Source: Mytilus californianus
Lineage: Eukaryota
Assembly (NCBI RefSeq): GCF_021869535.1
Contig: NW_026262581.1
Location: 5,828,001-5,892,000, forward strand
Length of the DNA: 64,000 nucleotides
Direction of reading: 5' to 3'
Shown here piece by piece: positions 30,301-33,300 of this stretch (position 1 is the first letter of the stretch; each line of letters begins with the position of its first letter). Below the pieces are notes generated by a model. That model had not been told where the DNA came from. It saw only the letters and a program-made list of their open reading frames with translations, and searched no databases. The position numbers and the translations under genes were made by a program.

Positions 30301-33300
30301 TGATGGTATGATACTAAACCCCTAACGGGAAGGATTGTGCCTGATATTCATATGATGAAGACATAATCTTTCAATCAGTTTAATTGAAGTCTGGAGCTGG
30401 CATGTCAGTTAACTGCTAGTAGTCTGTTGTTATTTATGTATTATTGTCATTTTGTTTATTTTCTTTGGTTACATCTTCTGACATCAGACTCGGACTTCTC
30501 TTGAACTGAATTTTAATGTGCGTATTGTTATGCGTTTACTTTTCTACATTGGCTAGAGGTATAGGGGGAGGGTTGAGATCTCATAAACATGTTAAACCCC
30601 GCCGCATTTTTGCGCCTGTCCCAAGTCAGGAGCCTCTAGCCTTTGTTAGTCTTGTATTATTTTTAATTTTAGTTTCTTGTGTACAATTTGGAGTTTAGTA
30701 TGACGTTCATTATCACTGAACTAGTATATATATTTGTTTAGGGGCCAGCTGAAGGACGCCTCCGGGTGCGGGAATTTCTCGCTGCATTGAAGACCTGTTG
30801 GTGGCCTTCTGCTGTTGTCTGTTCTGTGGTCGGGTTGTTGTCTCTTTGACACATTCCCCATTTCCATTCTCAATTTTACCTTAGGAGCTTTATCACCAAA
30901 AGGAACCTAGAAAAAATAGCCAAATTCAGCCAAGGTCAACTTTGTCTGATGTTTATCATTACTTATGATGATTTCATTTGTCACATCAAATAACTCATGC
31001 TGTTTGATGTTAATTATTTGTCCATCTGTTATATAATGGAAATCAATATATTTGACCAGATATTTATTCAAAATGTTGAAGTTTATACCAGTAAGGAGTA
31101 AGGAGTACATAAGACAGACATTGAAATTTGCTTATGCATATAATGAAGGGGATAATTATTTATTGAACACAATGAGAATTAAGTAAACAAATTACAGTGT
31201 ATTCTGTATGATAAATTTGTTATATAAGTAAAACATCCCCATGGTTGACTGGGGTATTGAAATATGGTCACCTGTCAGGACTTCTCCCATTTGGCAGTAA
31301 AAAAAACATGCTAAAGCAAGGTGTCTGTTTGGCTGTACCAGATGTACAGTAAGACCTAGTTTGAATGGGAATGTAAAATCAGATACCTTGTAAAGGGAGA
31401 GAACCACATTATCTTCATGTTAAAGTACCCTTACATGTAACAACTCATTGAGGGATCAATAGGAGGCCTGCATGTAACTTTTATTGTTGCAAAGCAAAAT
31501 GTCTGCCCCCATCTAACATCACCTATTTTCCAGTTGCAATCTAAACTTTCTGCCCTTCATCTCAGTCTACCTTTTGTCCATAACTTACCAATTAGATTTA
31601 TAGTTAATTTGTTCTCATCCTGAATATGTATGAACTAATATCACAACAACAATCATTATAAACAAAGCATAAGCAAAAAAATCTCAAACAAATTTCTTTT
31701 TACTTTGGAAAGTTGAACGAACATTTGCAGACTTTTCACCCATATATCATCCAATGCCTGATTCCATAGTTGGAATGATACTATTAAAAAAATGAATAAA
31801 GCATGATAGACATTTCTGCTTATATCAGTTTGTTAATCCTGAACTCCTTGAAACCAGCTGTACAGAATTCCACTAAACTTGCATTGATTGTTCTACAGAA
31901 CATGAAGTTGTGCACCAGCTATTTTGATATATTTTTTTTATCAATATTAAAATAAGAAGATGTGGTATGATTGCCAATGAGACAACTCTCCACCAGAGAC
32001 CAAATGATGTAGAAGTTGACAACTATAGGTCACTGTACGACCTTTTACAATGAGCAAAACTCATACTGCATAGCAAGCCATATCAGGGAACCCCCATTCT
32101 TATTATACTTAATGGTGGCCATTTCTGTATCAGTAGGTGACACTCGTCTTATTTGGAAGATTTGTACACATTGATGTACCATGGACACTCAGTATAAATG
32201 ACTACTTTGATATTGTAGGACTGTGCATAAACATGTGTTAAGCCTATGAAATATATTGAATAAGCACAATGATTTATGAAAGTATTTGTGTGGTTTTATG
32301 AGGATGTGACTTTATATTTTGGTCAGTTATTGCTAAGGTAGTCAACAAAATAAGTAAGGACTTACTGGGTACATATGGTAACATTTATCAGTAAGTATTT
32401 GGTACACATTAATTCAAAGGAGGAATAGTACTAGTGCTATGTAATACAACTGTTACATAGTATTGCTTGATAACAATGAGATAAAGATAATGAATGGCTA
32501 TTTATATGGTAATTTAGTTTTCTTGTCTTATTACTGAGTCACAAGCTTCCCTTTAATGATTTTTATTGGGTTTCTAATGTCTGTTTAACTTTATATTTGT
32601 ATGAGATCTGGGTACATCCACAAAACTGTTTAATTTTCTGAATTGATGTTTCTCAGAAGTTAAGTCATTTATTAGTGTTTTCTGAATCTCATGACCTGCT
32701 GCAAAAACTTTTGCAGAGTTGTACGGTATGTAAAGGCCATGTGAGATAATCAAACCATTTTAAAATTCAAACAGAAAAAAATGTTGTTAAGAAGACAAGA
32801 TAGATGTGCAGCTTACAAAATAATAAAAAAAAACCACAAAGCAGAGAGCTAGTTCTATTAATATGATTTATAATGATTCAATTATTGCACACCTTACATT
32901 CCAGGTAACACCCACCACCAACAAAATAAATGTCATAAATTCAGATGAACTGCACTTAGTGTTAGTGATACACATTGTGCTTAAACTTTTAATTTTTAAA
33001 TGGGGTGAATATTGAAACCCTATGATTGGTCTATACAGAAACACGTCTATAGATATGATTAAATGAATGGAGTGAAAACCGCAACAAAAGTTGATACAAA
33101 TGCTATGATCTCATAATTGTAAATGAAAGGATTATGAACATCACAGGGTATTTGTACTTGTCTTAGGGCATAGTCTTCCTCATGAAGATTAAATCAAAGG
33201 CTAAAAAGCCAGATTAAGCTGCTAGGCGTTTTATAGCTTACTATACGTTATAGGTTTTGCTCATTGTTGAAGGCTGTACAGTGCCCTATAGTTGTCTAAA

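Follow-up and report, generated by a model that had tools for sequence, protein, structure and literature searches.

A Naiad copy with a twister-fold motif in its 3′ untranslated region

The stretch of DNA analyzed here, hereafter the window, comprises 64,000 nucleotides of Mytilus californianus (RefSeq assembly GCF_021869535.1, contig NW_026262581.1, positions 5,828,001 to 5,892,000 of the forward strand). It contains a 5′-truncated copy of a Naiad, a Penelope-like retroelement (PLE), whose 3′ untranslated region (UTR) carries a 91-nt motif with the fold of the twister ribozyme. Similarity to other copies begins at 27838; the copies all terminate sharply at 30878 on the 3′ side, whereas their 5′ ends vary, a combination that is the signature of target-primed reverse transcription. 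The open reading frame (ORF) of the reverse transcriptase (RT) retains a KR-rich block and the motifs CxC (SCNCS), GxKY (GPKY), DKA (VDKAAN), and RT (FRYLDD). According to Craig et al. (2021; PMC8557442), Naiads are diagnosed by CxC, by DKA instead of DKG, by GxKF/Y, and by a KR-rich block upstream of RT; all of these are present, in agreement with a preliminary description of this sequence that had named the host element a Naiad. Pieces of the window ORF had no Pfam match at E ≤ 0.01. The window copy, truncated at 27838, lacks the GIY-YIG endonuclease (EN) domain that is N-terminal to RT. Other traits of Naiads were also observed: the 5′ truncation itself, an inverted pair of copies at one locus (L006), pseudo-long terminal repeats (pLTRs) of 915 bp in the related element L123 described below, and AT-rich flanks in RNA-seq reads, as for the AT-rich/(TA)n targets of Naiads. 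No upstream pLTR or second twister was found for the window copy, which lacks the pLTR because it is 5′ truncated. Its 3′ UTR is laid out as stop codon, selenocysteine insertion sequence (SECIS)-like element, about 200 nt, twister motif, 237 nt, and element end (Table 1).

Table 1. Features of the Naiad copy, its twister-fold motif, and the other twister copies in the window
Feature	Coordinates	Strand	Basis or detail
5′-truncated Naiad Penelope-like copy; RT ORF and 3′ UTR, EN domain missing	27838..30878	+	Shared 3′ end, copy alignment, motifs
Sole in-frame TGA of the ORF (frame 27839-30238)	28793..28795	+	Cys in L123 at the same place (…DKAANNxxxV-C/U)
SECIS-like element, 52 nt past the TAA stop (30236-38)	30290..30354	+	Rfam SECIS_1 31.7 bits, E 1.4e-4; gathering 35
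Twister-fold motif, type P5 with P3	30551..30641	+	Pairings read directly; covariance model R1 108.7 bits; covariation; fold energy
P5, 5′ strand	30551..30560	+	Partner 30632-30641
P2 3′ strand GGGG (30564-67), general-base G30568, A30569, GGG (30570-72) of PK2/T1	30564..30572	+	
Segment in place of P1; two spacer-less palindromes	30573..30593	+	Fold energies; recurrence in lineages
Predicted cleavage site: N-1, scissile bond 30594/30595, general-acid A30595, A30596	30594..30596	+	Layout match to PMC8501958 Table 1 and Rfam twister-P1 consensus
P2 5′ strand CCCC (30597-600), pairs with GGGG (30564-67); then GC (30601-02) of PK1/T2	30597..30602	+	
P3 hairpin, stem CGCA/UGCG, loop UUUU	30603..30614	+	
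P4 CCUG (30615-18)/CAGG (30627-30); L4 UCCCAAGU (30619-26); A30631	30615..30631	+	
3′-terminal tail of the element	30771..30878	+	83-89% identity to three other window tails
Second, partly decayed twister copy, other repeat family	6766..6859	+	Covariance model R1 41.3 bits
Third, decayed twister-like copy, P2 CUCC/GGAG	4271..4359	+	Covariance model R1 23.1 bits, E ~1e-3

Anatomy of the motif

Read directly, the plus strand of 30551-30641 holds all core elements of a circularly permuted twister of type P5 with P3. Each element of the core, in the permuted order that had been proposed from the letters of the sequence, was recovered at its assigned position. The 5′-to-3′ order is that expected for a twister opened in P5. 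The 5′ part runs from the first P5 strand through AUA, P2′ (GGGG), G30568-A-GGG, and a 21-nt segment to A30594|A30595-A30596, and the 3′ part through P2 (CCCC), GC, P3, P4 (CCUG), L4, P4′ (CAGG), and a single A to the second P5 strand. In P5, GGCTAGAGG (30551-59) pairs with CCTCTAGCC (30633-41), and U30560.G30632 can extend the helix; the 5′ strand can also be written as GGCUAGAGG followed by U30560. Both pseudoknots can form, PK2/T1 between the GGG of L1 and the CCC of L4, plus an A.A pair, and PK1/T2 between the GC of L2 and the GC/GU of L4. The features that characterize the class are found as well: N|A-A directly 5′ of P2, G-A-GGG with the general-base G directly 3′ of P2′, the P2 and P4 helices, and an L4 loop of the form (G)UCCCAAG(C/U). 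Segment by segment, the motif matches both the table of Schistosoma mansoni twisters (PMC8501958) and the Rfam twister-P1 consensus string.

The nucleotide preceding the predicted scissile bond, N-1, is A in the window copy, the mark of a young subfamily in which many copies are 100% identical. It is U, giving the canonical U-A-A, in 98% of RNA-seq reads (520/530 and 295/303) and in most genomic copies. The nested twister structure has a free energy of -32.6 kcal/mol versus a minimum free energy (MFE) of -35.6, a gap of 3 kcal/mol in which the five pseudoknot pairs are uncounted, and the plus strand folds better than shuffled sequences (z = -2.97). The RNA can form P2, P3, P4, and P5 together with both pseudoknots.

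Covariation and constant nucleotides

Copies of the motif were aligned with covariance model (CM) R1, which included the nested helices without the pseudoknots; the counts for nested helices therefore lean to the model, and those for the pseudoknots do not. In alignment A4, 88.8% of cells are paired, versus 73.1% after shuffling and 32-43% with slid partners. Twenty of its 25 pairs change on both sides, versus 12.4 ± 1.6 in shuffled alignments, and none of 500 shuffles reaches 20. The proportion of paired cells is similar (87.7%) when 115 genomic copies are aligned to the model, with swaps at the level of families. Swaps in P2 include CCAC/GUGG, GCCC/GGGC, GCCC/GGGU, and CUCC/GGAG, and those in P4 ACCG/CGGU and AUCG/CGAU. 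P3 is replaced in other lineages by CACAU…AUGUG or CAGUAAC…GUUACUG, and P5 by CCCAGGU/GCCUG, GCAGAAG/CUUCUG, or GCUGUUGCG/CGCAAUAG, with pairing kept throughout.

The pseudoknots behave in the same way. In PK2, G-C becomes U-A in two lineages (L126 and L122) and A-U in two others (L135, and at two pairs in L133); in PK1, G.U becomes A-U (L126, L135) or C-G (L133, L123, L129). The column pairs concerned in A4 read GC 21, AU 2, and UA 2 (columns 20-163) and GU 20, AU 2, and CG 2 (columns 104-167). Neither the U-A-A of the cleavage site nor the G-A that includes the general-base G varies in any lineage copy retaining the fold. On this comparative evidence, we regard the twister tertiary fold as established and as maintained by selection in Naiad master copies, across lineages with RT identities of only 51-64%. 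The preliminary description had proposed a twister fold and had named covariation across copies as a check; compensatory changes in all helices and both pseudoknots bear out the proposal.

Copies and families in the M. californianus genome

The core pattern GAGGG-N12-40-AANNNNGCC-N6-30-GTCCCAAG matched the 1.65-Gb genome 17,337 times, compared with 7 matches for the reversed pattern used as a control. At least two repeat families carry the motif. Family 1 is the type found in the window; family 2 is known here from tail pieces only, its 3′ tail being similar by eye. Between the two, only a core of about 77 nt can be aligned (81% identity), and the flanks are unalignable. Their helices differ as well, with P5 formed by GGCUAGAGG/CCUCUAGCC in family 1 versus CCCAGGU/GCCUG plus CCACUG/CAGUGG in family 2, and P3 by CGCA/UGCG versus CACAU/AUGUG. 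Several copies of family 2 (L057, L091, L097, L112, and L113) contain two twisters 178-182 nt apart. If both were to cut, such pairs could release small RNAs of about 180 nt, a retrozyme-like layout. Three copies of this family, L115 (at about 215-222), L099, and L114, have in addition a conserved CTGATGAG about 80 nt upstream of the twister, which as a string alone equals the first half of the hammerhead core.

Twister tails in Naiads from other assemblies

Homologues of the RT piece number 4,419; we fetched contigs that encode RT homologues of 51-64% identity and searched them with CM R1. A motif on the sense strand lies 220-400 nt past the RT stop in 8 of the 10 testable loci (L122, L123, L124, L126, L127, L129/L130, L133, and L135), and CM R1 found none in the other two, L128 and L134. 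Three further loci (L125, L131, and L132), in which the downstream sequence is too short, stand outside this count. The source of L129/L130 is a metagenome of Thyasira cf. gouldi, a bivalve (L129 is GCA_002832875.1, MOXF01000374.1; L130 is SRR3928944). The L129 assembly was published as bacterial symbionts of this species; the contig in question codes for a Naiad RT whose tail carries a twister, and is probably DNA of the bivalve host that was sorted into a symbiont bin.

Among these loci, L123 is a full-length Naiad with a Zn finger, a KR-rich block, CxC, DKA, and RT. N-terminal to the KR-rich block, CxC, and RT it has a GIY-YIG core (VYV…YVGQT), for which the Pfam GIY-YIG match is weak and below the cutoff (E 0.013, 16.2 bits). 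Its internal stops are three in-frame codons, all TGA. The pLTRs of L123 are 915 bp long, 100% identical, and 4,574 nt apart, and each carries two twisters; the question whether the motif occurs in a pLTR of a full-length copy, raised at the outset, is thereby answered in the affirmative for both repeats. In the two elements with a defined end, the window copy and L123, the twister lies 237-257 nt from the 3′ end. The motif is an integral and conserved part of Naiad 3′ UTRs and pLTRs in several lineages.

Two palindromes in place of P1

The 21 nt between GGG and the cleavage site occupy the place of P1. A stable P1 hairpin within 30573-93 was ruled out, the MFE of the monomer being 0 to -2 kcal/mol. 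Instead, this region holds two perfect palindromes of 8-12 nt without a spacer in every lineage considered (the window and the corresponding region of L122-L135), with lineage-specific sequences. In the window they are UGAGAUCUCA (30574-83) and AACAUGUU (30586-93), the latter being AAACAUGUUU in most copies. Variants of palindrome 1 are UGAGAUCUCA, UGAGCGCUCA, GGGAUCCC, GGGCGCCC, UGGCGCCA, UUGGAUCCAA, AGGUACCU, AUGGCCAU, UGGUACCA, and CGGGCCCG; those of palindrome 2, which abuts or includes the U of the cleavage site, are AAACAUGUUU, AAACUAGUUU, AAACCGGUUU, and AAAUGCAUUU. Palindrome 2 extends up to the scissile bond or across it.

Shuffled sequences contain two such palindromes with a probability of mostly ≤0.005 per sequence. 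The homodimer of window palindrome 1 has a predicted energy of -15.6 kcal/mol, versus -6.7 ± 3.3 for shuffles, and across lineages these homodimers range from -14 to -19 kcal/mol while the monomers are unfolded. Since the palindromes have no loop, pairing between two copies is favored over hairpins, and cleavage may be governed by such pairing. The idea of a two-copy switch draws on a parallel with the hammerheads of canonical PLEs, whose helix III is minimal and palindromic and for which action as dimers has been proposed (Cervera and de la Peña, 2014; PMC4209133).

Relation to known ribozymes

Among the closest known systems is the type P5 twister (Rfam RF02684, clan CL00120; Roth et al., 2014), with which the motif has in common the order of elements opened in P5, the L4 loop GUCCCAAG, both pseudoknots, and the catalytic G and A. 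It differs from that type in having a segment of 20-25 nt with two palindromes instead of P1, in an L4 that ends in U, so that PK1 is G.U, in an L2 3′ strand of AUA or UA rather than AAA, and in scoring below every Rfam twister threshold. The twister “T-variants” of Perere-3, an RTE non-LTR retrotransposon of S. mansoni (Liu et al., 2021; PMC8501958), are likewise embedded in a retrotransposon, are present in thousands of copies, have a weak or absent P1, and contain a similar GAGGG-UUGG/UUGA string. Those twisters are of type P1, are placed at the element's 5′ end, and set the 5′ terminus of its RNA, with target site duplications abutting the cleavage site; in contrast, the Naiad twister is of type P5 and sits in the 3′ UTR and pLTR of a PLE whose copies do not start at the site. 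In host class and place (the 3′ region or pLTR, at both ends of a partial tandem), the motif resembles the minimal hammerheads of canonical PLE pLTRs (PMC4209133), in which the helix beside the cleavage site is also cut down to a palindromic stretch, monomers show little or no sign of cleavage, and a dimer mode has been proposed. Unlike them, it has the twister fold and occurs in Naiads, reported to be without canonical hammerhead ribozymes (HHRs).

That Naiads were described as lacking canonical hammerheads had been noted in the preliminary description and is so stated by Craig et al. (PMC8557442), who never mention twisters. Its author was also unaware of any described association of twisters with Naiads, and we found no paper that links the two. 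The sole published link between twisters and retrotransposons that we found is that to Perere-3/RTE, the only one cited in a November 2026 paper from the group of de la Peña. McKinley et al. (2024; PMC11662667) include bivalves among the taxa with predicted twisters, without a PLE context in the text, and the twister goes unmentioned in a 2026 preprint on retrozymes derived from PLEs. With the twister fold in Naiad tails, a known class of ribozyme gains a host element that is both new and informative.

Other features of the element and the window

The only in-frame TGA of the window ORF (28793-28795) is probably a selenocysteine codon, a reading based on the cysteine that the related Naiad L123 has there. 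Together with the SECIS-like element past the stop, it makes the window copy look like a selenoprotein-coding Naiad; in L135, a related Naiad, the SECIS_1 score is 42.8 bits, above the gathering threshold. Selenoprotein-coding Naiads have been described for clams.

Three other tails in the window (21355-21459, 46286-46394, and 56896-57069) share with the element no more than the final 105-175 nt of its 3′ end, at 83-89% identity; they are either copies truncated on the 5′ side or members of different families that have one terminal module in common. From 30829 onward, the depth of RNA-seq reads is doubled. Upstream of the element's 5′ end, the flanking DNA contains tandem repeats of about 56-77 nt (26891-27110), and 2 kb upstream of the Naiad copy lies an uninterrupted ORF of 306 amino acids (24760-25680, plus strand) with Syntaxin and SNARE matches (Pfam E 1e-18 and 7e-15).

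Evidence on cleavage

The explanation that we favor, and consider rather probable, is that the motif truly belongs to the twister fold, that it is built into the 3′ UTR and pLTRs of Naiads and into a short tail-only repeat family with a similar 3′ tail, and that it self-cleaves in the hammerhead's place. Cleavage between 30594 and 30595 would leave a 2′,3′-cyclic phosphate and a 5′-OH. In Naiads, the twister would occupy the position held by hammerheads in the pLTRs of other PLEs. It would act on transcripts with two copies, be it the upstream pLTR and the 3′ UTR or tandem units, rather than define the ends of inserted DNA.

Several results weigh against a cleaving twister. Some lineages (the L124 type and L129) have U.U in the outer PK2 pair, and a canonical P1 beside the cleavage site is not possible by pairing of the flanking nucleotides. 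The Rfam models do not recognize the motif: no twister match reached the gathering thresholds in the window or in four loci from other assemblies, so the search with these models that had been suggested at the outset came back negative. The relaxed search (E ≤ 10) of the window yielded a local twister-P1 match of 13.3 bits covering P3 and P4 only, and among related copies the best twister score was 17.2 bits, with partial or spurious relaxed matches to twister-P1; both scores are far from the 67.2 bits of the gathering threshold. The Twister-P5 model matched neither the motif nor related copies, although clan competition in Rfam conceals any weaker P5 or P3 matches. A genome search with RF02684 gave no match among the 79 of 35,978 candidates scored, which is uninformative at such coverage. 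The models miss the motif because of its permutation, the inserted P3, and, above all, the lack of a P1 helix.

RNA-seq likewise gives no sign of a cut. Raw RNA-seq reads (run X24) are flat in depth across the motif, with 578, 569, and 575 in the bins around the site, and there is no pile of read ends at 30594/30595, which about 800 reads cross. These reads are a weak test of cleavage because both strands are covered, depth follows genomic copy number, and 1,767 reads enter the AT-rich flanks; the signal looks mostly like read-through or DNA. Two minor joints within the twister, one going back 34 nt (14 reads, 30588-30621) and one skipping 52 nt (11 reads, 30586-30639), probably reflect copy variants that bear small duplications or deletions. 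In inserted copies the sequence runs through the site without a gap and stops at 30878. Among 100 listed copies whose base 8 nt upstream of the site departs from the consensus, about 30 looked like junctions, with apparent boundaries spread over 0 to -3, and no spike of 5′ ends appeared at the site, a comparison of low power. Cleavage at 30594/30595 had been proposed to set the ends of transcripts or pLTRs; since copies end at 30878 and there is no junction spike at the site, the ribozyme does not define the ends of the DNA copies, and this part of the proposal is not supported.

Alternative explanations

The strongest rival, which we deem unlikely though deserving of serious attention, holds that the RNA derives from a twister and is catalytically silent. 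Its fold would then be kept for recognition by the Naiad RT/EN complex in the 3′ UTR, as a means of template recognition in target-primed reverse transcription, or for joining RNA to RNA through the palindromes. Such an RNA would account for the absence of a break at the site in RNA-seq, for inserted copies that all run through the site and end 237 nt further on without a spike of 5′ ends, and for the missing P1 with its two conserved self-complementary stretches. It would also fit a module common to different repeat families with related 3′ tails, like the RT-recognition tails of SINE/LINE partners. Yet the nucleotides needed for chemistry only (the general-base G, A+1, and A+2) have stayed constant while nearly every helix was rewritten, and the departures from the consensus are ones that active twisters tolerate. 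In a massively parallel assay, McKinley et al. (PMC11662667) found P1 to be dispensable, any base to work at N-1, G.U in PK1 and insertions 5′ of the site to be tolerated, and L2 to be variable; about 94% of the natural twisters tested cleave. Because they are tolerated experimentally, the deviations from the consensus count in favor of cutting. Moreover, the hammerheads of other PLEs are likewise continuous across their site and have low monomer activity (PMC4209133).

It is also conceivable, although improbable in our view, that the motif is a selfish ribozyme module of short, non-autonomous, retrozyme-like repeats, namely, family 2 with its tandem units of about 180 nt, which would exploit the machinery of Naiads, and that it entered the tails of autonomous Naiads by recombination and has no role in their cycle. 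The paired twisters of family 2, 178-182 nt apart, and the restriction of similarity between the families to the core alone agree with this scenario. In the literature, Craig et al. (PMC8557442) raised the idea that HHRs “simply parasitize PLEs,” and the 2026 preprint derives animal retrozymes from PLEs. A recombined passenger accords poorly, however, with a motif 220-400 nt past the RT stop of autonomous Naiads with 51-64% RT identity, whose divergence tracks the RT lineages, with its position 237-257 nt from the defined 3′ ends of the window copy and L123, or with a full-length element whose two pLTRs, 100% identical, both carry it. Finally, the idea that an abundant repeat resembles the twister consensus by chance, for which only the Rfam scores far under threshold speak, is refuted by the 17,337 matches versus 7 in the control and by compensatory changes in all helices and both pseudoknots.

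Implications for Penelope-like elements

Naiads are the most abundant PLEs of many invertebrates, and their apparent lack of a ribozyme has been taken as an argument that hammerheads may parasitize PLEs and be dispensable (PMC8557442). This argument is turned around by the conservation of a twister at the corresponding position of Naiad tails, which suggests that a ribozyme, whichever its fold, is part of the PLE life cycle. The motif brings in, per bivalve genome, tens of thousands of copies with the twister fold that escape the Rfam models; it also provides a natural twister architecture without P1 and with palindromes, and offers a testable system for the unsolved mechanism of tandem insertion of PLEs.

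More tentatively, and by analogy with the hammerheads of other PLEs, Naiads may have recruited a twister whose P1 was replaced by palindromes and which is switched by the pairing of two copies, in tandem pLTRs or in two RNAs; some ribozyme in the pLTRs would then be a need of PLEs in general. We put this possibility forward as doubtful. If it is true, two unrelated ribozyme folds have been recruited convergently for one step of an unusual retrotransposition cycle, and the design logic of the Naiad twister would be the same as that of the dimer-dependent minimal hammerheads of other PLEs.

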